Shown: positions 12,303 to 63,326 of the stretch, one piece after another
How the letters are laid out: each line of letters opens with the position of its first letter
How positions within the stretch are numbered: the stretch's first letter is position 1
Origin: Rhodosorus marinus CCMP1338
Lineage: Eukaryota > Plantae > Rhodophyta
DNA length: 64,000 bases
Reading direction: 5' to 3'
Assembly (NCBI GenBank): GCA_029953675.1
Contig: JAMWBK010000013.1
Location: forward strand, 496,001-560,000
Translations under genes and position numbers: made by a program
The notes under the pieces: generated by a model
What the model was told of the DNA's origin: nothing
Databases searched by the model: none
Seen by the model: the letters and a program-made list of their open reading frames with translations, nothing else

Positions 12303-12425
12303 TGGGGTTATGCCCAGGGGGGTCGGATTTTTCGCTGTATAACCCTCTAAACCCCCTGTTTTCGAGGGTTTAACCACTTCTGGCTCGTAAACAGCGAAAA
12401 ACCCGACCCACTTGGCACAAACCTA
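12303..12425. mobile_element. MITE related to the TAGGGTTG hAT-like family
   Basis: Degenerate TIRs tggggttatgcc / ggcacaaaccta; 12345-12425 is similar to the reverse complement of 47698-47785. Confidence 0.6.
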
Positions 12426-15265: not shown

Positions 15266-15559
15266 GAATGTAGTCTTCTACGCCGCTCTGGGGTCTCCTT
15301 AGCTTAGCGTATCTTGATTTTCTTGCGTATCCCAGCGCTACATTCTGTAGTTGGAATAAACGGTCCAAGTTCCCTTTTACGCCCTGCGTAGTGATTCAGG
15401 CTATATGCTAGTGAAACCCACGCCCTCCCTCTTTAACTAGTTAAACCACCACTCATAAATAGCAAAAGCGGACCGACTAACACTTTCCAAAAAAAAAAAA
15501 GGGAAAGAGGCAAACGATGAATTAAATTGTTTAATCGAACGAAACGAATGGTTTAAGAA

Positions 15560-15960
15560 AAAACTCAGAGGGGAAAAAGACTATGCGCCCCGAAGATATC
15601 GCGCCTCCAACATCAAAGCAGCGTTCATACGCCTCGGCAAGAAACTTAAACGGGTAAACGATGAGAGAGACGGTCAGGGCGTTCGCGGAACAACTCTCGA
15701 AGCCAACGAAAACCAAAGAATCCATAAACCAAAGCACTCAATGACCATAGTTACCAGGCGATGAGCTAGAGCCGAAGCAAGGTGCAGGGGGAGGACGAAC
15801 GCCCCTCCTATTTCAACTCTTTTCGACTTCTCATACTGGCAGCGGCAAACCCCGGCACTCCCCGCAGCCGGCAAATAACGACTAGCCTGTGGATTAGTAA
15901 CAGGAAGACTAAAAATGATAGGGTCCGCTTGCCAGCGACTAGGTGGTGGTGGTTTTACTG
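15560..15960 (-). mobile_element. CRE-like subfamily C 3' fragment
   Basis: Similar to 27710-28100; ASALAHRLVTMVIECFG endonuclease-end motif. Confidence 0.7.
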
Positions 15961-16638: not shown

Positions 16639-17748
16639 ATGAAGAGCTACTACGCGACGACGGTGTTTATCGCGGTTGGTTGCTTGGCTGCAATCGCAGC
16701 GGGCCAGCAGCAGTACTGTAACCCAAATGGTATGCTTCCCACTTTCCAGAAAAGGCCCACGATATTGCACTATGGTGGGGGGTCGGAGACGATGGGGACT
16801 CGGGCTGGACAGATGGAAACACAAACAGTTCTGAACGAAGACGGATCAACGAGTTTTCAGGTGCTGGTAACGAACTACGAGGGGAAAATTTTAAACATTA
16901 CGAAAGTGAGAATTGGAGTTTGGCCCACTTGCGATGGGACTACCGTTCCCTTAGGACCCGGCAAGTTTCAGATTAACCTTGCCGACGATGAGATTGATCA
17001 GGGCAACTGGAGATTTCAGATTCCAGTGACGAGTATGCCGATTCCCAACTGCCTTTCTGAGGACAAGTTCTGCATGGTTGTGGCGCTGGGGGGATACGTG
17101 TCCACAAACGAATTTGTAAACCTCAGATTGTCCTCGAGCTACACCAATGGCAACCAGTGCCCGGCCCATACCCCTCAGGGACCTAACGGGGTGACTCAGT
17201 GCCCAATCGGCGTGACGTGGAGGGAGAATTGCGAGTCTGAAGGTTACTATCCCGTTTTCAAAAGCTGGAATTATCTGACCTTTCCAAACGGGCCCGAGGG
17301 GGATGTTTTTACTGCAAATTTGCGCATGGAGTCAATGCTTGGACCCGACGGAAATACAGGTCTCACGGTATTCATAACCACACAATCCCCAAACTTCCTA
17401 AAATTAACGAGAGCGAGGTTTGGAGTCTGGCCCAACTGCAACGACGGAAGTGTCCCCAATGGAGGAAGCAAGTTTCAGGTTAGCGTTACCGAAGATTTGA
17501 TTGATCAGCAAGACATGGCCTGGAGGATCGCAACTGCCGGGATGCCGATTCCCAATTGCGTTAATCTGCGCACTTTCTGCTTCGTCGGGTCGTTCAAGGC
17601 AGAAGTTATTGATTACCTCAATACCACCGTCTCGAGAAGCCTCGTAATTTCTAAACAGTACACCAATGGGACTCAATGCAAGGGCGGCATGGGTAGGGGA
17701 CCCAACGGGGTACAGCAGTGCGCAATCGGCGTGGATTGGCAAGTCTGA
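16639..17748 (+). CDS. Intronless secreted protein with two tandem ~140-aa Cys-containing domains; unknown family
   Basis: Signal peptide MKSYYATTVFIAVGCLAAIAAG; repeated motifs GVWPxC, KFQ, IDQ, MPIPNC, FC, YTNGxQC, GPNGVxQCxIGVxW. Confidence 0.85.
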   Translation: MKSYYATTVFIAVGCLAAIAAGQQQYCNPNGMLPTFQKRPTILHYGGGSETMGTRAGQMETQTVLNEDGSTSFQVLVTNYEGKILNITKVRIGVWPTCDGTTVPLGPGKFQINLADDEIDQGNWRFQIPVTSMPIPNCLSEDKFCMVVALGGYVSTNEFVNLRLSSSYTNGNQCPAHTPQGPNGVTQCPIGVTWRENCESEGYYPVFKSWNYLTFPNGPEGDVFTANLRMESMLGPDGNTGLTVFITTQSPNFLKLTRARFGVWPNCNDGSVPNGGSKFQVSVTEDLIDQQDMAWRIATAGMPIPNCVNLRTFCFVGSFKAEVIDYLNTTVSRSLVISKQYTNGTQCKGGMGRGPNGVQQCAIGVDWQV

Positions 17749-17799
17749 GGTTAGCTGCGATCCCCATGTGCTGTAAAAATAAAAAAAAAGCAGTGGTGT

Positions 17800-18065
17800 G
17801 ATCCGACCTTTACTTCATATGAAATACAACCTGAGTGTCTAAGAGCGTAATGGAATCCTTAGGAAACATCTGATAAAACCTTGCGTTCCAAATTCTCCGG
17901 AGAATGAGGGGTGCGACACGAACAATTCCGCCTTCGTGAAACTGCTTCTCGATAACCGTTCTATGCGATTCGATGGTGAAGCTCGTATCAATACGTAATA
18001 GACACAATCCACCTACGAACCACCACTTAAGATCGGTCGATAGAATTTCAACTTTGGCCTTTCTT
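17800..18065 (-). repeat. Dispersed repeat (second copy 24638-24905) with a conserved minus-strand reading frame
   Basis: gatccgacctt...cgacacgaacaattccgc...cgattcgatggtgaagc is shared by both copies. Confidence 0.75.
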
Positions 18066-19500: not shown

Positions 19501-19599
19501 GGCAACTACTTAATTCAATCAACACACCCAGGGATTCGTGATTCGGCTCTAGCTGATCCCCTGGTGATTGAGAGCTTTGGGTTTATGAATTCCCATTGG

Positions 19600-19740
19600 T
19601 TCTCGTTGTCTTCAGGATTTGCTCCGCGAAGGACGTGACCGTCGTCCTCACTGTTTACAAGTTTAAGTTTCTTGGCGTATGAACGCTGCGTTGACGTTGG
19701 AGGTGCGCGATCTTCGCCGCGCGTCGGTTTTTTTGTTGAC
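19600..19740 (+). mobile_element. CRE-like subfamily C 3' fragment
   Basis: Similar to the reverse complement of 15570-15700. Confidence 0.6.
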
Positions 19741-20261: not shown

Positions 20262-20511
20262 TGTAGCAAATTAGCTCTTTTGTACTTTTTTCCCAAACAT
20301 CCTCGCCTTCCTTTATTCGTACCCTGAGCCTATGCATCAAATGCATTCAATAAGTACTCTAACGTTCGTAGTCTCCGACTACCATGGACGGTCCTCATTC
20401 ACTCTACCCCAGGTATAGTGTATATCCGCTATGGTACCAATATTGTCTTCTACTACTACGTTCAGGTTTCTACCCAGATGGTGAAGGCCGCGTACCCTTG
20501 AGCTCTCAACA
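20262..20511 (-). repeat. Copia 3' LTR (250 bp)
   Basis: Aligns with 23896-24144. Confidence 0.88.
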
Positions 20512-22299
20512 CTCACCATCGGCCCTTTCCCACTAGGGGGATCTAATGTCCATACCGAGTCCCTTCTGCAAAATGACGAACCTATCTTTGGTAAGTCGCT
20601 TGGTAAATACATCCGCAAGCTTTTCCTCCGTTGGAAGATACCTCAATTATACCTCTCCACTTGTGCAACGGTACCTTGCATAATGGAGTTTCACAGACAC
20701 GTGCCGCGACATCCGGCTGTCGTTTGTTACCGACCACCTAATACAGGAATTGTTGTCAGAATAGTCTGGGGTTACGTTAGTCTGGGGTTACGTTTGCGTC
20801 TCGACTTCGCGTCCCAGCTCCTCAAGAAATTCTTGAGGCCAGCGTTGTAATGTGAGCATGTCGCCACGTGCTTGATATTCTGCTTCCGTCGTCGATTGTG
20901 CGATTGAGCGCTGCCTCCACGACCTGTACAGCACGGTTGATCTGTTCAGTAGCATACCGCTAGTGCTCCTTCGATCGACATTGTCGTCAGCCCAAGTTGA
21001 GTCAGAATACCCTGTCACCTGGTATTTTGTGCCGTTCACACCCTCTTCACCCAACCGCAGTACTAGATCCCTTGTACCTTGGAGATACTTGACAAGTTTT
21101 TCTCGCTTTTTCATAGTCTCCGAGCCTGAAGTTTGTCATTCTTGCGCATTGTCCCATGGCATTGGCTATGCCGGGTCGCGTTCTGGTGCTGAGGAATAAG
21201 AGCGACCCGACAAGTTCTTGAAAAGGTGCTTGCATCATCTCGGTGACTTCTTCCGTAACGGATTTAGACGTCATGATGATTGGAGTGGATAGGGGCTTGC
21301 ATCCTAACATTGCATACGTAGTGACGATGTCTTTGACGTATCTTGTCTGCCCGAGGTAGATTTCGCGTCTCCTTTGGTCTCGTTGTATTTGGACGCCGAG
21401 GAATTCATCTACCTTACCCAGCATCTTAACCCGGTACAGCGCCTGTAGTGTTTCCTTGGCTTTCCGCACGTCGCTCACGTTTCCAATGATCAACATATCA
21501 TACACGTGAACTGCAAGGATGAGCGTTCCCCGCTTGAAAACGCAGCTGTCCGTTCTCAAGGTGTCGACCCCGTGTGCTCTAGGTCGGCGTTCAGTTGCTC
21601 GTGCCAGACCCTCCCCTACTGCTTCAAACCGTAGAGGCTTTTCTTCAGTTTTCATATCTTATCAGCGTTTCCTGCTTATTCTAGCCCTTTCGACTGACAC
21701 AGGAAAAGTTCTTCCTCCAGTGTACCGTTCAGGTAGGCTGTAGTGACATCTGCCTCTTCCACTTCAAGATCTTCAGTCGCCGCTACACTCAGTCATACTC
21801 TGACACTAGAGAAGCCAACTGTGGGCGAAAATGTTTCATCGTAGTCGACGCCTTCTCTTTACGTAAATCGTCGCGTGACAATTCTTGCTTTGAATTTTGT
21901 CACCGCTCCATAACAACCGGTTCTCACTGGAAACACTATCTTTGAGCTCAGGATTCTTCGTCCGTTGGGCACTTTGTCTTTTGAGATAAATTGCGACGTT
22001 CCCTTTTCTCTCAGGGAGCCAATTTCTTCTGCGGCTGCTCTCTTCCACTCTTCCGTGTATGGACCTCCGTTTGCTTCCGCCAATGCCGTTGGCTCCGGTA
22101 CGTCGTACATGGAATCACCCTTTTGGAACAAGTTCTGGGTTATGGTGTTTTCTTGCTGTTGTGCCCTCTCTGGTTCCTTCGTTGATTCGGGCCATTCGTT
22201 GTCAGGCTTGCGGATCTTCTGAGCCTTCGGAGGACGTTACTCTTCCTGTATGCTCCAATTTCGCGTATGTATGAACTTGTCTTTCGTTGGCAAACATAC

Positions 22300-22700
22300 A
22301 TTAGCTACACGGGCGTTGCTCACGTGGAGTATGAGGTCCCTCTGGCGGTGGCAACGGAAATTGCTGACTACAGTGACGCCCCAGCGGTACAGCGGGTGGC
22401 GGATCTCGTTGTGTCTGACCTAAATGGGCGTCGCAGTGAGTACATTGACCTCTCCATCCCTTGTCCTCAGGCGACCAGGTACCTACCTGCGTCCGCTCGG
22501 CGTCGAGGAGCTGCAGCTCGGTCCATGTGGCACGTGAAAGAATCGCAGTACGCGGCAGCGACGTCAAAACCTGCTTTTCGCAATTCGGCGGTGACATACC
22601 GGTTTTTCCCCCTCACTCTTGAATGCTGTGGATTGATAGATAGTGGAGGTTCTCGCTGGCTGCGAGGTATCTTCGCAACGACCAAGGGCGTCTAGATAGT
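22300..22700 (+). mobile_element. CRE-like endonuclease fragment inserted antisense inside the Copia
   Basis: VEYEVP...RVADLVV...EYIDLSIPCP...FFPLTLECCG. Confidence 0.75.
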
Positions 22701-23883
22701 CTGCCACGGAGCTTTCTTTGACCCTGTGGCGCTCAAACGCTGCTTTGTTTGTAGACGCGCGTCATCAGCGTCTTGTCTCTCTATTCTCAGGGTAGTTAGG
22801 CTCTGAATAAACGTGAAGAAGGCGTTACTCACGCGCATGAGAGTTCCGACCCTGCCCTGGGTGCAAGTATATTTGCCAACGGAGGGCAAGTTCATACATA
22901 CGGGAAATTGGAGCATACAGGAAGAGCAACGTCCTACTGATCCTTTTGCGTCTGGCCCCCTTCCTCTTCCGTCTCCTAGGGTGATTCCGACCTTCGGGAT
23001 TGTTGTCAGGGTCCTGAACACTTCCTTGTCGACGCACACGTGGTCGGTGGCAACACTGTCGTGGAAGAAGGCTGATGAGCCTCCGCGTCCTGACGATGCC
23101 GGTATGGAATTTCTTAGGCTCTTCTGGTTCTGGACATGTATCCTTGAAATGTCCCCGTTGGCAGCAATTATAGCACCTGAACCTGTGCGTCTTCCTGGTC
23201 GCTTGGGTGTCGGCCATCACGGGTTTCCCTCCCTTGCGCCTCTCTTTGGATTTCTGTTCCTCCTGTTGGCGATCTCGCCAACTTTCTGTGTACTCCTCCA
23301 GGCTTCTGCACAACGCCCATGGCAGGTTAGGGTCCCTCCATACGTTAAACAGGAAGTCCTTGAACTCTGGTCGGTCCTCAAGGATTTATCTCATGAACCT
23401 TAGCCTCTCAGAGTCCTTCGGAGTCTCGCCAGAGGTTTCTCTTATCTTGGCGAACTCCCTGTCCAGCCACGAAATCAGCGCGCGAGCGCTTTCTGTCGGC
23501 CTCACCTTGGTCGGTAAACACGGACGCAAACGCTGTCTGTGTTTCCTGCTGCCGTCGTGTCGTATCTTTCGCAAAGATGATCCCACTGGTTCTTTAGTTT
23601 CCTCTGCGCCGATGACTATATCGAGCGCTTTCCCCGCCAGTCCTCGCCAGGACAGCAGACGCATATGCTCGTCATTATTGTCATCTCCCCTGGCATCCAC
23701 CAGTACGTTAGCTACTCCCTTGAGTCGGAGAAACGTCTGTAGCTGGTACTTCCATTGCCGAAGCAGTCCTGGATTCCTCCTCCCCAGTATTCTGGAGGTA
23801 ACTTCAGGTCCATTGTTCGCTGATCCCTCGAAGCCAAACTCCCACTGGTTTCCATCACACAAAGGTATTTCTGATCGCACTAA

Positions 23884-23895
23884 GCGATGAGACCT
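23884..23895 (-). promoter_or_regulatory. Copia primer-binding site (aggtctcatcgc)
   Basis: Immediately 3' of the 5' LTR on the element strand; 11 nt identical to the Gypsy PBS at 25549-25559. Confidence 0.65.
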
Positions 23896-24144
23896 TGTAG
23901 AAAATTGACCTCTGTTGTAACCATTTCCTAAACGTCGGTGCCTTCCTGAATCGTACCCTGCCCCATGCAACAATCGCATTCAATAAGTACTCTAACGCTC
24001 GTAGTCCCCGACTACCATGGACGGTCCTCATTCACTCTACTCCAGGTATAGTGTATATCCGCTGTGGTACCAATATTGTCTTCTACTTCTACGGTGAGGT
24101 TTCTACCGCTGTGGTTGAAGCCGCATACCCTTGACCTTTCAACA
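23896..24144 (-). repeat. Copia 5' LTR (249 bp)
   Basis: Aligns with 20262-20511. Confidence 0.88.
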
Positions 24145-24210
24145 CTGCGACTATGAATGTATGAATCGTAGCTTGCGACTATGTTTGAATCGCGCGGAAG
24201 ACTATATTAG

Positions 24211-24264
24211 TAGGGTTGTGCCAAGCGGGTTTTTCGCTGTTTACGACGCACTGGAACAACCCTA
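24211..24264. mobile_element. 54-bp mini-MITE with TAGGGTTGT/ACAACCCTA TIRs
   Basis: Perfect 9-bp TIR flanked by direct repeats atattag (24204-24210, 24265-24271). Confidence 0.75.
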
Positions 24265-24274
24265 ATATTAGTGG

Positions 24275-24360
24275 CGCATGAATGCCGCTTTGATGTTGGA
24301 GGCGCGAGTACTTCGCCGCGCTTAGTCTTTTTTTCCCCTCGGGGTTTTTTTTTTTTCAGC
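24275..24360 (+). mobile_element. CRE-like subfamily C 3'-end fragment
   Basis: Similar to the reverse complement of 15560-15640 and 27715-27770. Confidence 0.6.
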
Positions 24361-25244
24361 CTCCGATTAAACCATTCATTCAATATTAGTAGTGTTGTCA
24401 TGTGCCGTACGACAACGTATCGGACTGCACATAACGCTTATCGGACGGTCCCAATAACTTTCGAAGTGGATAGACTATTGAACAATAGTATAAAATGAGC
24501 GGGTGCCGATTGATATTATTCGACAAAACTGGTCCGATAAACGGTCCGACAAATCGTCCGATACTCAATCAACATTAGTCAGGTAATCAATCATCTCCAG
24601 TCCAGATATTGAATCTGTTGTAAAACGCGGTGATTTTGATCCGACCTTTATTTCATACCTAAGTTATAGGGAATACCACCTAATTATATAAGAGCTTCTG
24701 GAATCCTACAGGCAATATCCGATGCAACTTGACGTTCCAAAATCGCCGGAGAAGGAGGGTTCGACACGAACAATTCCGCTTCCGTGAAACTCCTTCCCGC
24801 TAATCGTTCTATCCGATTCGATGGTGAAGCCCACACCAATACGTAGTAGATACAATCCACTTAAGAACTCATCCGTCTCAAGAATTTCAAGCCTTGCCTT
24901 TACTGCAAGGTCTTCTTCTTCTTCTTCTCTACTTCACTCCCCTGTCACCACTTGGGTTTTCGACATAATATCGTATCCACTGGCGGCTAATCGACGGTTC
25001 ATTGCATAAAGAATAATTAAGAATGACAGGCTGTCAGACTCAACAGTAACCTCCATTCAATGCCAGAGCCAGGATTCCAACAGAATCATGATGACTTCTT
25101 GCTATGGACAAGCTCTTCCTCGGATATCATGAATCATGATTACTTGTCCGCATGACAAGAAAGCTGCCATTATCATGCATGAATCATGATTATTTTGGGA
25201 CTCTACTTCTGATCTCGACAGGCTGTCATAGCGTTTGTTGATAA

Positions 25245-25545
25245 TGTGACGTCCTCACCTTCCAGCAATGTCCGTGTATGCAAAATTATGCTCGGGCTGT
25301 GCCAAAATCTCTGGTGGTGCAACACCCTTTTGATCTTAATAGCTATTGCACTCCCGATGGAGCAAGAGTATAAGTATGGACGAACTCGATATTTCCCAGG
25401 TTAGCTGGAGAGGGAGGAGGTAAGATAGAGAGGAAAAAGGATAGAATTGGAATATATTACCTAATTAGGGAGTAATTAGGTGGGAATAAAACCGGAAATA
25501 TGGAGTAATTGAGTGAATACCCAGCTGGCAGTTTGAGACGTAAAA
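25245..25545 (+). repeat. Probable Gypsy 5' LTR
   Basis: Starts TGTGAC, followed by PBS tggtctcatcgc (25548-25559) and gag; the 3' end lacks a clean CA. Confidence 0.55.
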
Positions 25546-25683
25546 TCTGGTCTCATCGCATGATTGCGATTGAGGAACCGACCCGGAGCCAGAGAACCTG
25601 AAGGACAACGAAAATGAGCCCACAAACCTGAGAACCTGAGAACCTGAACCCGAAGAACCTGGAGACCTGAAACCTGAACCCGC

Positions 25684-26466
25684 ATGTCGTCGCTCATTAA
25701 GATCCAGGCCCCACAACCGAAAGCCTACGACGGGCGACGCGACGCCTTGCTCATCACTACGTTCCTGAACAGCCTGAGAACTTATTTCAAATTAGCGAGG
25801 CTTCCCGACGACGATGACGAATACAAAATTACCCTGGCAGAAGGGTATTTGACGGGTGATGCTTCGTACTGGTGGTCCTTAATTGGGGACGACCAGCGGC
25901 CGACAACCTACGCGGACTTTGAATCTACGTTGAAGGCGCAATTTTACCCCGCCGACGCTACGATACGAGCAAAACAACAACTTGCGCACGAGAAGCAGAA
26001 AACCACTGTGGCCGCTTACTCAGGGTATTTTAACAAGTGCCTCATTCAAGTCGGTGCGATTTCAGACTCGGAGAAATTCGACCGGTTCGTTGAAGGGCTA
26101 AAGCCTGAAATAAGGAAATATATCTATATTCAGGATATTTCCACATTCGAGGGAGCCCAGGCTCTCGCCCTAAAAGTCGAAGGAGCTGACCACGCGAGTC
26201 AGGGGCTTCGACGGGATCCCCAAGACCAGCGACACCGTAAACCAGAGAGCCAGACAAAACCGATACCACGAGGAACAAGATCCGGCCGTTCGTACCAACC
26301 CCAAACCCAGGAGTTACGCAACGGGAAATATGTCAACGTCATTTGCAATTTCTGGGGCAAGAAAGGACATACCCAAAGAATCTGCTGGAAAAACCCGGAT
26401 CGGGACCCAACTGTGTCAAAATCGGCACCCCCTTCGTTGTCAGAGTTAAAAGAGGAGCAGCAGTAG
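25684..26466 (+). CDS. Ty3/Gypsy Gag with a degenerate CCHC knuckle; C-terminus ends in the hairpin loop
   Basis: PQPKAYDG, YLTGDASYWW, YADFESTLKAQF, RFVEGLKPEI, CNFWGKKGHTQRIC. Confidence 0.85.
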   Translation: MSSLIKIQAPQPKAYDGRRDALLITTFLNSLRTYFKLARLPDDDDEYKITLAEGYLTGDASYWWSLIGDDQRPTTYADFESTLKAQFYPADATIRAKQQLAHEKQKTTVAAYSGYFNKCLIQVGAISDSEKFDRFVEGLKPEIRKYIYIQDISTFEGAQALALKVEGADHASQGLRRDPQDQRHRKPESQTKPIPRGTRSGRSYQPQTQELRNGKYVNVICNFWGKKGHTQRICWKNPDRDPTVSKSAPPSLSELKEEQQ

Positions 26467-27067
26467 GAGGTGTCGATACTGACACAGTTGGGTCCTGATC
26501 CGGGCCTTTCCAACAGATTCTTTGGGTGTCCTTTCTTGCCCCAGAAATTGCAAATGACGTTGACATATTTCCCGTTGCGTAGCTCCTGGGTTTGGGGTTG
26601 GTACGAACGGCCGGATCTTGTTCCTCGTGGTATCGGTTTTGTCTGGCTCTCTGGTTTACGGTGTCGCTGGTCTTGGGGATCCCGTCGAAGCCCCTGACTC
26701 GCGTGGTCAGCTCCTTCGACTTTTAGGGCGAGAGCCTGGGCTCCCTCGAATGTGGAAATATCCTGAATATAGATATATTTCCTTATTTCAGGCTTTAGCC
26801 CTTCAACGAACCGGTCGAATTTCTCCGAGTCTGAAATCGCACCGACTTGAATGAGGCACTTGTTAAAATACCCTGAGTAAGCGGCCACAGTGGTTTTCTG
26901 CTTCGCGTGCGCAAGTTGTTGTTTTGCTCGTATCGTAGCGTCGGCGGGGTAAAATTGCGCCTTCAACGTAGATTCAAAGTCCGCGTAGGTTGTCGGCCGC
27001 TGGTCGTCCCCAATTAAGGACCACCAGTACGAAGCATCACCCGTCAAATACCCTTCTGCCAGGGTAA
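25829..27067. repeat. Long inverted repeat: arms 25829-26418 and 26480-27067, ~61-bp spacer
   Basis: Mirror ORFs in the ORF track are identical (26042-26278 minus = 26618-26854 plus); a few differences, mostly near the loop. Confidence 0.95.
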
Positions 27068-27414
27068 GATAAGGCAAAAACTACCTTTGGGCTACCACCG
27101 AAAAGGTAAACCAAAACCCATGCTTATTGATGACTCAAACCTTAGTCCAACCGGCAGACGCATGAACCGAAAAAGATGAAAAAAGCATTGAAAAAATTGG
27201 GATGCAATCGGTCGTTATCGGACCATTTATCGGACGAGGCATATTCTTTCTTTTATATTCGGGCCCGATAAACTCATATCGGACAGGCGTCCACAGAAAG
27301 TACATTTAATTATTACTAGATACAGGCCCTATTGATGCTTATTCGCCGTCCGATATTTGTCGGACGCAATCGGACGTTTTTTATCGGACGGATATGACAA
27401 CCCTAATATTAGCT

Positions 27415-27680: not shown

Positions 27681-27709
27681 CAATGATGAATTTTATTTAA
27701 TCGGATACT

Positions 27710-28815
27710 GAAAGAAAAACCCCCGAGGGGAGAAAAAAGACTAAGCGCGGCGAAGATCGTGCGCCCTCAACAAGAAACTTAAACGGGTAACAACGAGGAC
27801 AGACGGTCAGGGCGTTCGCGGAACAAATCCCGAAACCAACGAGATCCAACGGAATCCAAAAACCCAAAGCACTCAATGACCAGAGGCACCAGGCGATGAG
27901 CTAGAGCCGAAGCACGAATGCCTGGGGAAGACAGGGCCCCCGCCTATTTCAACTCTTTGCGACGTCTCATATTGGCAAATCCACGGCTCTCTCCCGCAGC
28001 CGGCAAATAGCGACTTGCCTGAGGATTAGGAACAGCAAGCTCAACGTACGTCGTACGACGACTATCGTCACAGGTGACCACGAAGTCAGACACGCGGCGT
28101 TCATCATTCCGGTAGTCTGCGACAGGCAGTGGCTTCTCAATTTCAATTTCAAGACCGGCTAGCCGTACGATAGGTCGAAGTTCGCGGTATAACAGGTTCA
28201 AGATCCGCGTATGTCGTCGGGGTCGGGCGCCTTTCACAGAGAGCGTTTCTCCAAATCTTCCTTCTGAGATCTATTTACCATGTTGTAATTGGCTACCGTG
28301 ATCGTTCCTTCGATCATATCTTTTCTTGAATCTCCACTTTCTAGCCATTCAAGGTATTCCAAATATAATCTATTTTAGAATAAATTAGCCCCCTATGAAT
28401 ATCAATCAGAAAACACCCCACGAGTAGGTCGTTGTCGGTGAGCGCTTGCTCTGCGAGGTGAGCGAGAGGGGCTCGGTGTGTAGTCGTCAGGGCAGCTGGC
28501 GAGCAGGTGGGCCAAAATCCGCGGTACCTTCGTTCTCAGAGCATAGAGGGCAGGGCGAACCCATCTCGGAAGGCCAGGACTGCTGATGCAAACCGAGGTG
28601 TAAACGCAGAGAAGCGCGCACTGCGAAATCTGTCAGTGCGAGCAGGCGGGGACGCTCATAGCCACTGCGAGCTGATACACCCTCCATGACTACGCAGGCG
28701 GGTGCGATCTCGGGAAGGTGAGACCGTCTGCGCGAGAAGTCGGCCGTAGGCAGCACGATCGCCCCAAGAAAGCGTGTTTTGCAACGCATCCGTGCGTGGT
28801 CGCTGCTTCACTCTT
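27710..28815 (-). mobile_element. 5'-truncated CRE-like subfamily C element
   Basis: LTDFAVRASLRLHLGL...CPLC; RRHTRILNLL...RVSDFVV...TYVELAVPNP; LVPLVIECFG. Confidence 0.8.
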
Positions 28816-28854
28816 CTCCTACCTTCCCAAGTTCGGCCTAGAGCAAGCTAATAT

Positions 28855-28925
28855 TAGGGTTGTCCTATCCGTCCGATTGCGTCAGATAAATATCGGACGG
28901 TCGGATAAACGTTTATCAAACCTGT
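28855..28925 (+). mobile_element. Isolated end of the TAGGGTTG hAT-like element
   Basis: tagggttgtcctatccgtccgattgcgtc is similar to the reverse complement of 27345-27405. Confidence 0.7.
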
Positions 28926-31900
28926 AGCTGGTAAGTTAGAATCCCGAGGAAGACTATTTTAGGCGGTCCTAGGTCACTTAGGAAGTTAAAAGAAAAGTAA
29001 AGTAGCGAATTCTGGGTACAAGCGATTAGGATGTTCAGCGCCCCTTGCCTTTGGGAGTCTTTCTGGAAGTGGAGGGCGAAAATTGGTGAGATTTCTTTAA
29101 CGACGTCTGCGTACCAGTCGAAGAACGGTCTAATTAGGCTTACCATGGTAGTTGGATAGGCGTGGAGTATAGAAAGAGGTAACTCTACTCGCATGAGAGA
29201 TCAATTTGTTGACATGTTTTTCCCCTCAGGGTTTTTATATCATCGTTTGGATTGTCGAATCTATTAGGTATTGGGCGTCTTACTCCGGCCACAGTGAGCG
29301 TGGTCGCATCGGGGCGGGTTGTTCTTGGCACGCTCCTGGGGCGCGGGGGAGTTGAGCAAAACGTTTTGCCGTCTGACTGTTTTCGTCGATATTGGTTTTT
29401 CTAAAGCGATGGGACATTCTTAGGTGGACGATGATGGTGTATGGAACGTCCTCTGCTTACCAATGATAGATCTCCGGTCTACAGGGAGAGGTAGTTCTCG
29501 GCTTATTTCTTGGGAAGTCATCTCTTACAATTCATGTCGTAATCTAGTTGCTGAATGCCCTTTACGTTGTGGGCTTCTATAAAATTGAGAAGTGGTGGTT
29601 CAGATTAAATTGCGCGATAGATTAGAGGCGGTGTTGGTGCTCCTGCTCGCGACCGGTTTGGCTGCTTTGAATCTATGAACTATGCGTCTACTTGTGGCCC
29701 TAGATTTTTCAATGACTGGTACAAGCGGCCAGGAACAAACCACGCTGAAGCAACGAGCGGTCTGCACTCGTCGATCTTAGCCGTCATCGCGAGCTTTTCA
29801 TTTTCCGGATTACGATGAAGTAGCAGTGAGCTACGTTCGCCGTGGCGACCAAGCCTCACTCATGTAGGACTCGTGAAGCGGTATTTGAATCTCTTATCTC
29901 AAACTTGCTGCTCGAATGCAGAGTTCAGCTAAGGTGATTTTGCCGCGGCCTTGTTGGAATTTTATTTGTCTGCTTTCTGTGGCTCGTATCGTCAACAATC
30001 AATTTCGATATACGACCACGACTGCGCAAAGTAGAACTGCTGAAGCACCATATTTTGGCGATACACAACTTCAGCAGTACCGACTCCAGCTTGCGGCGCA
30101 AACTTGGCCATCAGCGAGAGTCCCATGAGTTGCTTTTTGGAAGCTACCTCCAAATACTCGCTCTATCATTTTTCCTTTTCTGAATCAGGTTGCCAATACT
30201 TGAAGCCCTTGTTCATCCATCAACTTTGTGCTTTGGATCGATCGCAAGCAGACAGTTGCCCGACTTCCAAACGCCCAAGCAGCTTCTTGGTCGAGCTTTC
30301 TCCGCCAAGTTGGAGTCATCATTTTGACTCCAACTTGGCTATTGAATTTCAATATTTTTGTTGAATTTCTGTGTGCCTTCGTCTCTTTACAATTTCAGAC
30401 AAATAGGCACTCGCGATATCTAGACAGTAGAGTGACGGTTTGAGCTGTATCGAAAAATTGAGACAGTCTTTTGTGTATCGGTTCCTGCATAGAGTTTTCT
30501 AACTTTTCCTATAGGCTAGACAAGGTTTTAGTTTGGAACGGTTTGTGACAATCAAAAACGTAGACGATGAGCGCTGCGAACCAAACTCGGCCGCACAAGT
30601 GAGAATAGTTTTCACACTTTACGTTAGTCTGTTTAAGCTTTCACAGTTAGACTAGCTGCCGTTTACCTTAATCCTAAAGCCACGTTGCAGATTGAAAATA
30701 AAATTGAGCACAAGTTAGGAGTACTCGGGGAGAAGCATTCAGGCAGAACTTTGAAAATTGTTCTGGTTTCGTATGATAGCACCGGCCAGTTCTGTTGAGG
30801 CTCTGACTTGCTGATTATGAGTACAGAGCATGGACGGTATCATTCGCCTTATGAAAGCATTGCACGCTTATTAAATTCCTGGACACTTAATCATTTTGGC
30901 CGTTTGTCTCAAGTATGGCCAACCACAGACAAGAGCGAGACACTCCAGCACACCGCAGCTTAACCCGTTTGACTGAATCGAACAGCGAAATTGCGGCACT
31001 CACTAGTACAGGGCTTGTTTGCTGACAGTAATCGATTCGTCGCTCAGAACAGCCAGTAATAACGCCAACCGACGTGCACGCGGAAGGACCCCAATAAAAA
31101 AAGGACAACTAATAGGCCAACCCGATCTCTTAAAAAACCGTTAAAAATCGAACCAAAACGCTCATCAAAACCCTACGAAAACAAGGGCAAATCCAATCAA
31201 ACACGCTCTCTAAAAAATCGTTTAAAAACCGCATTCGATTCTTAAATACCGTTGCCCAGCCGGTGACCACATTCACAATAAGATCGATCAGTCTCCGAAT
31301 AAAATCCATTCCGTTGTAGGATCCAATTCTGCTGCACCCGAAACGATCTGCATTAGCTAGGGGCAGCAGACCTACGCAGCCGCCACCTTCCAAAGTCCAA
31401 GAACTCGCGAAATATTTGAAAACCGGTAGTGACAGGCCAATGAGGTGCCAGGAAAACCCAGCACCCTACCAACGAAGTTACTTCGTTGTTGGGGTTCTTC
31501 GGAACATACCTAACCGTAAAACTTATTGTATGACTCTATTAAGAATTTTTTGTGTTAGTTGAAAATGAGGAGAATTCAGAAAACTAAGCTATGGAGAGAT
31601 CGGTTCTCACAGACAAGCGCTTCTCAGAAAGGAGCAACAGACAAGAAACTCATGCTCTCAGTCGCTAACTACGTGTAGGAAACGATACAGTTGTCTTGAA
31701 TCCAGTTTCGACTGAAAAGAAGGAGCTTCATTCCATGGGTTTGGGGATATTGATATTTTCCACTCCTAGCTACATTACGAGCGTCACAAGTTGAAACGGT
31801 GGTTGTCGCTATGTTAAACACTTGAATTCGTGATTCAATTCAGCACGGGTTAGGGACCTTTACTCGGAATGGGACTCAATCTTGCTCAGCCTATCTGAAT

Positions 31901-34199: not shown

Positions 34200-35500
34200 C
34201 GAAATTCTCACAGTTTTTTTCCTCGGCTTATTAATATGTCGCTCTCCTCCCGCCAACACCTCGCTGATCATCTAAGGGGAAAGACAGAACAAGGCCCACT
34301 GGTGTCGATGGAAAACCCCTCACTGCAAGGTCGTAAGCTCGTGCTGCCAGTGTAAGCAACTGACTAGCTCGAATCCACTTGAACCCGATACGCCCTGCTG
34401 ACTTGAGACGGTATTCTCGACCCAAATCTCCATCGCGATGATCCACTATAGATAGAAGAACACGCCGATTGTCGGGAAAGATCCCATACCGAGGATCACC
34501 TCCCTCTCGTCGATCTTTGCTCCACTCCCGTAATCTGTTCACATGAACTATAGATTCCTTCTCCCGACTTGCTTCACTCGCAATCATTTAGCTAAACATC
34601 TGATAGCCATGTTTTCAACATATACGGTCCCACCATGGGGTCTTCAACTTGCGCCCGACGCCGAGATCGTCTGGAGGGTAGTACCAAACCACCGTATCCC
34701 CCTGTGGAACTTTGTCTACTTAACTGTACCATCAGACGCCTTCTTTGCCACATGCTTCGCCTTCCAACTGCGATCGTACTACTCCCGATGCAAACATCCG
34801 ATGATGATTTACGCGCCAGAGTAGAACAAGCTACCGGCGAGAAAGTCACTAGCAGTACTGCGACATGTAGCCCCTGCATGAGGGAAACGTGCATAAACTT
34901 CATTTTTAGACGCTTCCGAACACTACGTCACTGGACATAGTTGTCCACCAAAATTGCCTCTGTAGTCGACCCAACGTTCTCACTACACAAGGATGACCAA
35001 CTGTGATAGCCCCGTGACAAGGACGTAGAACTTCTTCTCTGCAAAACGTCCGGAGCCAGTATTGGTGACCCTTTTTCTCCACGCGACACAGCAACCCGTC
35101 TTCGTTGATGATAAACTTCCCCGCCCTGTCCTCCGCCGTAGAAACGGCTCCAGAGCACCAAACTCCGCCACTTCAGCTTTCCTAAGCTCATGAATGGCGT
35201 TCTTTTGGTCGCCCCAAGAGTCGCCGTGCAACGTTTCTGACCTAGGAGCCCTCATGAACGTTCTTCCCTTGCCTCATCCCGGTGGGAAGGTAACTTCCTA
35301 CTTTGCGCGACTCGCTACACACCCACCATTAGACACGCAGTCACCTCGCCAGCTACGGCCCCTTCCACTGGGTTGCGTTAGTCTTGGATGAACGTGTGGG
35401 ATTCACCCCAACTGAATATTGCTCGACAAAGAAGGTCATGCGATCCGAGTTGAACTGCATACGTCCAGGGCATGGTAGAGTAAGACGGAGAATTCTAGAC
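34200..35500 (-). mobile_element. Degenerate chromovirus-type Gypsy (RNase H, integrase H2C2, chromodomain)
   Basis: CH...GHPCVVRTLGRLQRQFWWTTMSSDV; VHVNRLRE; SIVDHR...REY...KW. Confidence 0.75.
34793..34895 (-). pseudogene. 103-bp copy of a fragment of the neighbouring MATE coding sequence
   Basis: About 87% identical by eye to 39091-39193; MHVSLMQGLHVAVLLVTFSPVACSTLARKSSSDV vs MYVSLILGLLVAVLLLTFSPGACSALAGKSSADI. Confidence 0.85.
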
Positions 35501-38617: not shown

Positions 38618-40183
38618 ATGAAGCCGGACAGAGAGAGAGAGCATGCCAGAGCTGCGGGCGATTCTGTTGGTTTTGACCGAGTCGCGTCGCACGGGTTGGC
38701 GTTCATGGTCGGCAATGCACTCCCGAGCGTACGCACAGTACGGCGTCCCGTGCAGCGTTCAAAGGTTGCCTGCATTACCAACCCCGTACCGTCGAGATTC
38801 AAGCCGAAGCGGTTTGTAAAGGGGTTGGTGTCAATCGACCGCAAACGTGACAGAAAGATTTTGGGGATAGCTTTACCTGCATTATTCACCTTGATGGTTG
38901 AGCCAATGCTCTCAGCAGTGGATACTGGATTCATCGGTCGGCTTGGCGTATCTGAGTTAGCTGGAGTTGGAATCGCCGTCGCTCTTATCCGGTCGTCATT
39001 TGCCCTCTTCAACTTCCTGGCTGCATCTACTACGCCGACAGTGGCCGCAGCTTCGGATCGGGAGGAATGCTCGAAGATTATCGTTGAGAATATGTACGTT
39101 TCCCTCATACTGGGGTTACTTGTCGCAGTACTGCTATTGACTTTCTCGCCGGGAGCTTGTTCAGCTCTGGCGGGTAAATCATCAGCGGATATTGTTCCAA
39201 TAGCTGTTCTGTACGCTAGATGGCGCGCGATTGCTGCCCCAGCTTTGTTCGGCGGTTTTGTCTTGAGCGGGGCGCTGAGGGGTTTACAGGATACGATCAC
39301 TCCGCTCATATCAGCGCTAGCATCAAATGGACTTAACGTGGTTCTGGACTACATTACGATTTACTACCTCAATTGGGGGGTTGCAGGAGTCGCGATAGCG
39401 ACTAGCATATCTCAAATAGCGAACACTGTGATCCTGCTTGTGGCAATGCTCAACAGACGCATAGTGAATTTCAAGGATCTGTCCAGACTCCCTTCTATGG
39501 ACACTGTGCGACAGGTAGGGTTCGGAGCGGTGCTATCTATTCGAACGATGAGCATACTAGCGACGTTCATCAGCTCAAGCCGATTGGCAGCTTCGCGAGG
39601 GGCCGTCGCTCTTGCTGGGTACGAAGTCGCGCGTCAAGTATGGATTTTCCAGGCTTTCGTCCTTGACGCTCTGGCTGTTGCAGCGCAGAGCTTCATCTCC
39701 GGGTTTCTTGCGAAAGGCAATATGTTCGAAGCCCGTCGGTATAGTTCGAGACTGCTGCAGATCGGACTATGGTGTGGGGCGCTTCTTGGTGTCCTTGTAT
39801 GGGCTTCATCTAGTTCGATTCCGGCTTTGTTCGTTGGAGACCCAGCAACTAGAGAGATGGCAGGAACAATGTTGAGGTACATCGCTCCGTTGCAACCTAT
39901 CTGCGCTCTGGTTTTTGTTTACGACGGGATCTTTATTGCTGCACGCGATTTTACTTATACTGCGCAAAGCATTTTCTTAGCTGGTGTGGGTTCGTGGATT
40001 GCCCTAGTATACGCGGCATCCCTTCCAGCAACTAGCGTGGGTGCTGTTTGGATGGGTGTCAATGTGCTAATGATAGGCCGTGCGGTCGCGCTTGGCTCCC
40101 GATATTTATCGCGCCGCGGGCCTATTCCGCCCTCATCAGATGACGACGTGGAGGAATTAGAAGCCCCCAAACCTGCTCAGTAG
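38618..40183 (+). CDS. MATE (DinF-like) efflux transporter, probably plastid-targeted; start may be the ATG near 38705
   Basis: IALPALFTLMVEPMLSAVDTGFIGRLG, GALRGLQDT, DALAVAAQS, VFVYDGIFIAARDF. Confidence 0.93.
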   Translation: MKPDREREHARAAGDSVGFDRVASHGLAFMVGNALPSVRTVRRPVQRSKVACITNPVPSRFKPKRFVKGLVSIDRKRDRKILGIALPALFTLMVEPMLSAVDTGFIGRLGVSELAGVGIAVALIRSSFALFNFLAASTTPTVAAASDREECSKIIVENMYVSLILGLLVAVLLLTFSPGACSALAGKSSADIVPIAVLYARWRAIAAPALFGGFVLSGALRGLQDTITPLISALASNGLNVVLDYITIYYLNWGVAGVAIATSISQIANTVILLVAMLNRRIVNFKDLSRLPSMDTVRQVGFGAVLSIRTMSILATFISSSRLAASRGAVALAGYEVARQVWIFQAFVLDALAVAAQSFISGFLAKGNMFEARRYSSRLLQIGLWCGALLGVLVWASSSSIPALFVGDPATREMAGTMLRYIAPLQPICALVFVYDGIFIAARDFTYTAQSIFLAGVGSWIALVYAASLPATSVGAVWMGVNVLMIGRAVALGSRYLSRRGPIPPSSDDDVEELEAPKPAQ

Positions 40184-47697: not shown

Positions 47698-48730
47698 TAG
47701 GGTTGTGTCAAGTGGGTTGGGTTTTTGGCTGTTTGCTAGCCAGAAGCGGGTAAACCCGCGAAAACAGGGGGGTTTAAGGGGGGCTGGGCAATAAGTGGGC
47801 AATTTGATGGGCAATAGGCGCCGATTCCAGTGCGTCCGTTGAACATGTGGTGGGTGGGCAATGAAATTTTAATGAGTATTGCGGGGTTTTAGTGCGAAAA
47901 TGCCTCTGTTTTCAGGGGGTTTGGTTTTCAGAATCACGCTTTCGCGAGCGCAGACCCCCGCAGACCACGAACAACGGTGAGGGAAGCTTGGGGAATTGGA
48001 AAACAGTCCGTTGACAGGATGGGGAAGCAGTTCTGCGGAGGTTGTGAAGCATCTATAGAAGCTTCTACAAAGCCTTAGCACCTCCCCTTCCGCTTACCGT
48101 CCTAAACCTGAGGGTTCCAGGAGTATTTGTATTTCGGACAGGACGGGGGATCCACATGGTATGGATAGAAGAGCTACTTGAGCTCGATCAGCTGAGGGAT
48201 ATCTCTTCTTTTGGGTAGCTGATATCCTAAGATCTTAAAGAAACCGGAAAAAACACTGTGAAGCTCAGCGCCTGTTGCACAGAATACTGGACACGACTAA
48301 CCCGAGCACGAGTTCTCAAGCCTACCACCTCTGGGCCTTCAAGCAGCCGAAACGGTAGGTTTTGTACCGCCGACATCCTCGCGAGCTTAACTTCGAGCTC
48401 TTCTGCTTGCTTCCCTTTCTTAATCGTCGGCGGACAAAAGTCAGTTAAGTCTGCTCCCTCGCGCTTTCCGCTTTTCGAAGTTAGAAAGCTTTAAAGGCCG
48501 GACGCTGGAGTTGCACCGGATCTTCTGCTGCCCGTGGGAGCGTCATCTGCGATCATGTACCGATCGCACTTCTGCAGGTGCTTCTTGAGGCGTTCAACTT
48601 TGTTTCTTACAGGTAAGTCGTAATGCTTGCAGATCAGCTTGCCCTTGACCTCGTCGTACTGCGGGTGTTGCCGCGCTAGCATCCTGAGGTTGCAACGCAG
48701 CGCATATTCCTTTCTCGTCGCCATCTGTAC
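47698..48730 (-). mobile_element. Internally deleted hAT transposon: TAGGGTTG end plus transposase remnant
   Basis: TIR at 47698; BED-finger-like KLICKHYDLPVRNKVERLKKHLQKC; hAT-like ELEVKLARMSAVQNLPFRLLEGPE. Confidence 0.7.
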
Positions 48731-63164: not shown

Positions 63165-63326
63165 TGGGTGCCTCACACCCTAAAATTAGGTGATCAGACG
63201 GGGTTTGAGGTATGGATGAGATGGGTTGCAAGCTCCAGTTCCGTATGGGTGCCTCACACCCTAAAATTAGGTGATCAGACGGGGTTTGAGGTATGGATGA
63301 GATGGGTTGCAAGCTCCAGTTCCGTA
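63165..63326. repeat. Exact 81-bp tandem duplication
   Basis: tgggtgcctcacaccctaaaattagg...gcaagctccagttccgta x2. Confidence 0.95.

Follow-up and report, generated by a model that had tools for sequence, protein, structure and literature searches.

A young, probably genuine gag fold-back within a DNA transposon of the red alga Rhodosorus marinus, with the capacity to form hairpin RNA

The unicellular red alga Rhodosorus marinus carries, in the nuclear genome of strain CCMP1338, a locus at which the 5' end of a Ty3/gypsy retrotransposon, residing in a non-autonomous DNA transposon with terminal inverted repeats (TIRs), has probably been rearranged into a genuine and young fold-back. The whole stretch of DNA that was analyzed, referred to here as the window, comprises 64 kb (64,000 nucleotides, nt) of contig JAMWBK010000013.1 in assembly GCA_029953675.1, and a window coordinate equals the contig coordinate minus 496,000. 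The gypsy-derived fold-back block is found at 25245-27067 (contig ~521,245-523,067). It consists, in order, of a probable 5' long terminal repeat (LTR), a leader, a complete gag, a 31-nt turn at the stop codon and antisense gag reaching back to gag nt 146. The parts of the block, and the short direct repeats at its edges, are the following.

25240-25244, no strand: left copy of the 5-bp direct repeat GATAA, directly before the TG at 25245
25245-25448, plus strand: putative U3 of the 5' LTR, which begins with TG and holds TATAAG at ~25371
25449-25683, plus strand: 5' leader, whose homology to the 5' end of L001, an R. marinus gag transcript, starts at the first base
25684-26466, plus strand: complete gag open reading frame (ORF) of 260 amino acids (aa), Ty3_capsid / Retrotrans_gag, with the stop codon TAG at 26464-26466
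25829-26433, plus strand: left arm of the inverted repeat, part of the gag ORF
26434-26464, plus strand: spacer (loop) containing the last gag codons; the turn is within ~5 nt of the gag stop codon
26465-27067, minus strand: right arm, which repeats gag nt 146-750 in inverted orientation
27068-27072, no strand: right copy of GATAA, directly after the inverted arm

The fold-back is defined by its two arms of ~603 nt (25829-26433 and 26465-27067), which are separated by the 31-nt spacer. Inverted repeats were located by a repeat search of the window, while differences between the arms were determined by base-by-base alignment. The gag fold-back is the sole long, near-perfect inverted repeat in the window. 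The search divides it into an outer part of 541 nt (25829-26369 and 26527-27067), scored as 100% identical, and a loop-proximal part of 63 nt (26371-26433 and 26465-26527) with 87% identity. Compared base by base, the outer 540 nt contain two mismatches, 25991/26905 and 26314/26582. At the first of these the left arm encodes Glu and the right arm Ala; because the relatives carry Ala, the left arm is derived at this position. The mismatch at 26314 is synonymous. The loop-proximal 63 nt harbor eight substitutions, of which seven are transitions, together with a 2-nt deletion in the right arm (26369-70), i.e., the differences are concentrated next to the loop (Fisher p=3.5e-7). Polarization with two outgroups indicated that the inner changes are mostly derived in the right arm. 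A reading in which both arms hold derived states on the loop side was dropped, because with the second outgroup it is the right arm that is mostly derived, with two exceptions that are within chance. An earlier interpretation of this DNA, made from the sequence alone and referred to as the sequence-only reading, had described a near-perfect inverted copy of part of gag with a few differences clustered by the loop. Both descriptions are borne out and the arms are longer than described there. That the inverted repeat is a real structure can be stated with high confidence. Poor consensus at the centre of the palindrome could account for part of the divergence in the 63 nt; other explanations are a patch of ectopic conversion acquired after breakage of the centre, or error-prone fold-back priming.

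The copy of gag to which the left arm belongs is complete, as concluded from its full-length match to a 254-aa Gag in an R. marinus MMETSP transcriptome and from the identical position of the stop codon in that protein. This Gag, 74% identical over its full length, is the closest protein among 5.8 billion and was the only match in the search with the gag protein. A pN/pS of 0.16 relative to the transcript Gag indicates that the source lineage has been under purifying selection. Both the gag ORF and the right-arm ORF match the Pfam families Ty3_capsid and Retrotrans_gag, i.e., a Ty3-type capsid domain is present (PF19259, E=9e-14; PF03732, E=5e-11). The CCHC zinc knuckle of a gypsy nucleocapsid is disrupted in both arms by a Cys-to-Trp replacement; the sequence is CNFWGKKGH in each arm and CNYCGK in the relatives P0001, L004 and P0007. 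The sequence-only reading had noted this shared mutation, correctly, and had concluded that the fold-back post-dates it. This order of events is likely, although gene conversion between the arms could yield the same picture.

Related elements are expressed elsewhere in the species. Transcriptomes of other R. marinus strains contain their gag-pol transcripts, which run on into protease and reverse transcriptase-RNase H; in these relatives the protease frame begins at the gag stop, in the -1 frame. At the fold-back locus pol (protease, reverse transcriptase, RNase H and integrase, PR-RT-RH-IN) is absent, while it is present in the related transcripts L001, L004 and L008. The fold-back block is a fragment of a Ty3/gypsy element without pol, without a 3' LTR and with a broken zinc knuckle. 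Searches for closer relatives gave little: a search of a representative library with gag returned just more MMETSP fragments and distant gypsy gags, a scan of metagenome contigs with the gag alignment found only a 29% relative, and a search with pol fragments for full-length copies in the same genome found only transcripts of ~60% aa identity from other strains. In the public collections searched, nothing was closer than ~70% nt identity to the gypsy block. The relative transcript L008 was examined for a hairpin and none was found.

The turn of the fold-back (26434-26469) is within ~5 nt of the gag stop; for breakpoints distributed uniformly along an element of ~5 kb, the probability of such a coincidence is roughly 0.2%. 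This site corresponds in the relatives to the region where the frame changes between gag and pol. The site may be one of pausing or of structure, or the gag ORF may have been kept intact by selection.

Upstream of gag, the alignment to transcript L001 starts at window position 25449, which fits an R region that begins at about this position and, consequently, a U3 at 25245-25448. The start of L001, together with the GATAA followed directly by TG at 25245, makes an LTR probable. Support for the gypsy LTR claimed in the sequence-only reading is indirect, i.e., the two observations above speak for it, but 25245-25683 has no second copy in the window. The PBS named in the same reading is putative. 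Two direct LTRs are not seen; one probable copy is present and the 3' part of the element has been replaced by the inverted arm. Two blocks of the leader, CCCAGCTGGNAGTTTGAGAC and CTGGTCTCATCGCATGNTTGCGAT (25515-25575; L001 80-140), are conserved far above the leader average of 68% and hold stems with variable loops (TGAGAC...GTCTCA and TCGCA-TGAT-TGCGA). These blocks could represent the LTR end, the primer-binding site (PBS), a structured element, or a dimerization or packaging signal.

The GATAA direct repeats flank 25245-27067 exactly. The pair resembles a Ty3-type target-site duplication, yet what it adjoins on the right is the point where the inverted gag arm stops, and not an LTR end. 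The repeats fit a capture event no better than they fit the insertion of a gypsy element into a resident DNA-transposon relic. A plausible sequence of events is that the block arrived as a nested gypsy insertion, marked by the 5-bp GATAA repeats, and was then rearranged. The fold-back may have formed during repair or replication, through template switching or fold-back priming and perhaps in connection with aberrant transposition of the host element; alternatively, snap-back during reverse transcription could have produced it. The host TIR transposon is itself part of a composite insertion in an island rich in transposable elements (TEs). The components of this insertion, and two related sequences downstream, are listed below.

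24211-24264, no strand: mini-element of 54 bp with the TIR pair TAGGGTTGTGCCA and TAGGGTTGTTCCA (the latter as reverse complement) and ATATTAG on both sides; left edge of the composite insertion
24272-24382, plus strand: fragment X, located between the mini-element and the main element and corresponding to one end of another repeat family
24383-24389, no strand: left copy of the 7-bp direct repeat ATATTAG
24390-24570, plus strand: left TIR TAGTGTTGTCAT and subterminal TATCGGAC(G) array of the non-autonomous TIR DNA transposon
24571-25239, no strand: non-coding interior of the transposon, no Pfam match in six frames
27215-27405, minus strand: right subterminal TATCGGAC(G) array and right TIR TAGGGTTGTCAT, the TIR being on the minus strand
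27406-27412, no strand: right copy of ATATTAG
28800-28934, minus strand: inverted paralogue of the right end and its flank, 76% identical overall and 98% over 43 junction nt
28932-29100, plus strand: paralogous empty site, where the flanks on either side of 24211-27405 adjoin each other with a single ATTTTAG

The TIRs of the main element match at 11 of 12 positions (TAGTG... and TAGGG...) and start with the YARNG pattern. The motif ATCGGACG is found eight times in the window, each time in one of the two subterminal regions or at an isolated third terminus at 28855. The paralogous empty site is good evidence for a real insertion. Relative to this site the inserted sequence is 24211-27405 as a whole, including the mini-element and fragment X; other copies of the fragment X family are found at 15555-15633, 19674-19733 and 27696-27777. 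The mini-element, fragment X and the inverted end-plus-flank copy point to repeated or aberrant events. Accordingly, the unit delimited in the sequence-only reading by TIRs and direct repeats stands in part: the TIRs and ATATTAG are present, but the true insertion is the composite 24211-27405. The mini-element, which has TIRs of the TAGGGTTGT family, shares ATATTAG with the main element 125 bp away, and independent insertions do not explain these shared repeats.

Assignment of the transposon to the hAT superfamily, as proposed in the sequence-only reading, is not supported. The direct repeat is 7 bp (ATATTAG) and not the 8 bp of a hAT target-site duplication (TSD), and neither of the possible 8-mers matches. 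Six frames of 24390-25244 gave no Pfam match to a transposase or dimerization-domain remnant at E<=10 and contained no long ORF. A hAT dimerization motif, suggested by a weak resemblance, was rejected on the negative six-frame Pfam result for the transposon interior. The hAT label reflects a resemblance of the TIR sequence only. Termini of the PIF/Harbinger (TWA) and Tc1/mariner (TA) types were also rejected, since ATATTAG is perfect at all four junctions and the 2-3-bp alternatives fail. Within the transposon interior, 24622-24868 is 77% identical to 17785-18020, which is located just downstream of a host gene at 16639-17748 (369-aa ORF); the two segments are alike in one minus-strand frame (VDC[IV]YYVL..ASPSNRIERL) and neither has a Pfam match.

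The functional consequences of this architecture are conditional on transcription. The RNA of 25829-27067 is predicted to form a hairpin with 602 paired positions and a folding energy of -1271 kcal/mol, and any transcript through the inverted repeat would therefore yield long double-stranded RNA (dsRNA) of ~600 bp. The statement to this effect in the sequence-only reading is borne out as a folding capacity. A scan against Rfam returned only sub-threshold look-alikes of microRNA (miRNA) precursors at the loop, which reflect the hairpin shape alone. If the retained LTR fires as that of a related element does in another strain, an RNA hairpin of ~600 bp would be produced, and if this RNA were diced the locus might act as an incidental source of dsRNA against the gag family, similar to Mu killer of maize. 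Among red algae, loss of DCL1 and AGO1 is reported specifically for the Cyanidiophyceae (PMC9812998), and Chondrus holds one Dicer-like protein and one AGO (PMC12026948). That the locus is a source of small interfering RNAs (siRNAs) is a serious possibility that falls somewhat short of an even chance, and that it is an effective silencer in trans is clearly less likely than that. A working hairpin-RNA gene, in which LTR-driven transcription through sense gag, loop and antisense gag gives rise to Dicer/Argonaute siRNAs that restrain the cognate gypsy family, is unlikely.

Several observations weigh against the interpretation of the locus as a young fold-back with an LTR able to drive a hairpin transcript. 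The divergence between the arms jumps sharply, from 0.4% in the outer part to 13% near the loop. The U3 promoter is putative given the single copy of 25245-25683, the leader shows no PBS complementarity to the only tRNA of the window (Asp), although conserved blocks starting with TGG are present, and the probability of a coincidental GATAA followed by TG is ~0.05. The genome annotation, which used RNA-seq, has no gene model at the locus, and in transcriptome and assembly collections no exact-protein record was found for the gag ORF, the 292-aa right-arm ORF or a 75-aa ORF that spans the loop. The dense, heterochromatin-like nest of TEs around the locus may be transcriptionally silent, and no literature was found on RNA interference (RNAi) in Rhodosorus.

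The alternative that survives best goes beyond an incidental dsRNA source and holds that the locus is a selected, or at least effective, mobile silencer, i.e., an LTR-driven hairpin from which siRNAs act in trans, with hAT-like ends that transpose the silencer. The structure is exactly that of a hairpin-RNA transgene, the leader is homologous to a transcribed leader, and TIRs, flanking repeats and subterminal motifs are all present. Precedents are found in Mu killer (PMC3440606) and in Ac composite insertions (bioRxiv 10.1101/2020.01.07.897926), and RNAi genes are kept outside the Cyanidiophyceae (PMC9812998). On the other hand, the functional steps, i.e., expression and small RNAs, are wholly inferred, and there is no intact cognate element in the window. 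The GATAA repeats suggest insertion of the gypsy element into the transposon, not packaging by it. The repeat that flanks the transposon measures 7 bp, and the mini-element shares this 7-mer within an insertion that is composite. A search within the window for other copies of the 24390-27405 unit found none, and with a single copy in 64 kb, no transposase and a composite insertion the packaged and mobile silencer put forward in the sequence-only reading is not upheld. No evidence was seen that the locus is mobile or selected for a silencing role. The alternative as a whole is improbable, and mobility of a silencer, taken by itself, is very improbable, even if a TIR transposase might still be able to move the hairpin locus.

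The inverted TE coding duplication with its capacity to form long dsRNA is of the structural type represented in maize by Mu killer (Muk), where a MuDR with a partial deletion is naturally duplicated in inverted orientation (Slotkin et al. 2005; PMC3440606), and the comparison with Muk drawn in the sequence-only reading is apt (PMC3440606). In both cases a single locus holds two opposed copies of TE coding sequence, from which a read-through hairpin could silence the family in trans. The two systems differ in that Muk originates from a DNA transposon and owes its transcription to a flanking gene, whereas the R. marinus locus contains gag of an LTR retrotransposon, probably with its own LTR. 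For Muk, the hairpin RNA, the siRNAs and heritable silencing were shown experimentally, whereas the R. marinus locus is known from sequence alone; furthermore, the hosts are maize and a red alga, respectively. A second parallel is offered by Ac/Ds composite insertions (Wang et al. 2020, bioRxiv 10.1101/2020.01.07.897926), in which inverted TE duplications are linked to an aberrant TIR (hAT) element. The R. marinus locus also has extra termini, namely the mini-element and the inverted end-plus-flank copy. In the Ac/Ds case it is Ac itself that is duplicated and the mechanism of alternative transposition was reconstructed genetically; in R. marinus a nested gypsy gag is duplicated, by a route that is inferred, and the TIR element is not demonstrably hAT. 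Rearranged endogenous pararetroviruses (PMC9868043) similarly contain retroelement sequence in inverted duplications, which are proposed to feed RNAi immunity. Those are micro-scale inverted conformations in plants, accompanied by siRNA data, in contrast to a red-alga gypsy gag for which the data are those of the genome sequence. Compared to Ty3/gypsy elements (Metaviridae) in general, the R. marinus copy shares a gag with a Ty3 capsid domain, but lacks pol and the 3' LTR and has a broken zinc knuckle. Structurally, the locus appears to belong to the Mu killer / Ac composite-insertion type, in an unstudied lineage, and the functional story is plausible.

Inverted duplications derived from TEs are the best-documented start of silencing against an active transposon. 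To our knowledge, only a small number of examples have been documented, in maize and other plants. How red algae control their TEs has hardly been studied, and Dicer and Argonaute have been lost in part of the phylum. A working hairpin gene at this locus would represent the first TE silencer of the Mu killer kind to be found outside plants and animals, and it would provide direct evidence that Rhodophyta use RNAi in genome defence. As a clean hairpin of young age at one locus, directed against a gypsy family with expression in sister strains, it offers a convenient test case, for which reads, RNA-seq and a culture strain are available: small RNAs mapping to the arms would reveal TE defence by RNAi in this phylum and make the locus a dated example of the birth of a silencing trigger, and in their absence it would be another rearranged TE relic.

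An origin of the fold-back, or of its divergent centre, in the assembly or polishing process must also be considered. The 31-Mb genome, of which 15% is repeats, was assembled with NextDenovo 2.5.0 from Oxford Nanopore Technologies (ONT) GridION reads and polished three times by Pilon with 100-bp Illumina reads (PMC10250338). An ONT-only assembly with short-read polishing could contain ONT chimeras, NextDenovo consensus errors or, in a repeated family, errors introduced by Pilon; the centres of palindromes are difficult to sequence and polish, the cluster of differences is located exactly at the centre, and no independent record of the junctions was found. However, a template-complement chimeric read would run on as the reverse complement of all upstream sequence, whereas the right arm ends at gag nt 146 and joins unique, non-palindromic sequence that ends in a matching TIR and the 7-bp repeat, a junction which also speaks for a genuine fold-back. 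The central differences are mostly transitions and not homopolymer indels, the centre of the left arm encodes the conserved C-terminus of Gag and the natural stop, and the arms differ at two outer sites, at one of which the right arm keeps the ancestral Ala. An artefact is therefore considered quite improbable.

Less probable still is a scenario where two independent gag copies landed tail to tail and gene conversion later homogenized 540 nt. The inner 63 nt do differ by 13%, as diverged members of a family would, and the right arm matches an outgroup at two inner sites. This scenario nevertheless requires that both copies end near the same gag position (26433 and 26465), the inner differences are mostly derived in the right arm only, and no LTR or flank remnants of a second element are found. 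The least probable alternative is that the intact, knuckle-defective Gag acts as a restriction factor of the Fv1 or Ty1 p22 type and that the inverted arm is incidental: the turn-around leaves the whole 260-aa ORF and its natural stop intact and the Cys-to-Trp replacement in the nucleocapsid knuckle could give a dominant-negative Gag, but a 600-bp hairpin in the 3' part would make the mRNA a poor message, intactness of the ORF may reflect youth alone (0.4% arm divergence), and there is no sign that this copy is conserved elsewhere.

The fold-back is found in a region, ~1-30 kb of the window, that is a nest of TE fragments, including RVT_1, a copia-like element and miniature inverted-repeat TEs (MITEs); the annotation calls one gene in 21 kb. 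The copia-like LTR element (20262-24146, minus strand) directly adjoins the composite insertion. Its 253-bp LTRs (20262-20513 and 23896-24146) are 85% identical, and it contains an RVT_2 ORF at 21047-21655 and gag-like ORFs with a CCHC-like motif at 22825-23979. MITE-like fold-backs at 12303-12425 and 47698-47780, with TAGGGTTGTGYCAAG... termini, belong to the same terminal family as the TIR transposon and are 86% alike. The complete 123-bp MITE at 12303-12425 has imperfect 7-bp flanking repeats (CCAGGTA and CTAGGAA), for which 7 bp fits better. A further repeat family (15555-15907, 19527-19733, 27696-28237 and also 22267-22695) holds a short ORF with the motif ...L(S/A)(I/V)P.PQA(S/T)RYLPA...; this family has just a weak, sub-threshold match to Uma2 (restriction-endonuclease-like) and is unclassified.

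Beyond the TE nest, an ORF of 687 aa at 32018-34081 matches the porphyranase beta-sandwich domain PF18206 with 31.5 bits (Pfam cut-off 27) and is not an annotated protein. A porphyranase-like protein in a red alga is of possible interest, e.g., in relation to cell-wall remodelling or horizontal transfer. An inverted repeat of 103 nt with 88% identity is formed by 34793-34895 and 39091-39193, where one arm is located within a MatE transporter ORF (38618-40183), i.e., an inverted copy of a fragment of the MatE gene sits 4 kb upstream. Finally, 63165-63326 is a perfect tandem duplication, composed of two copies of an 81-bp unit with 100% identity.

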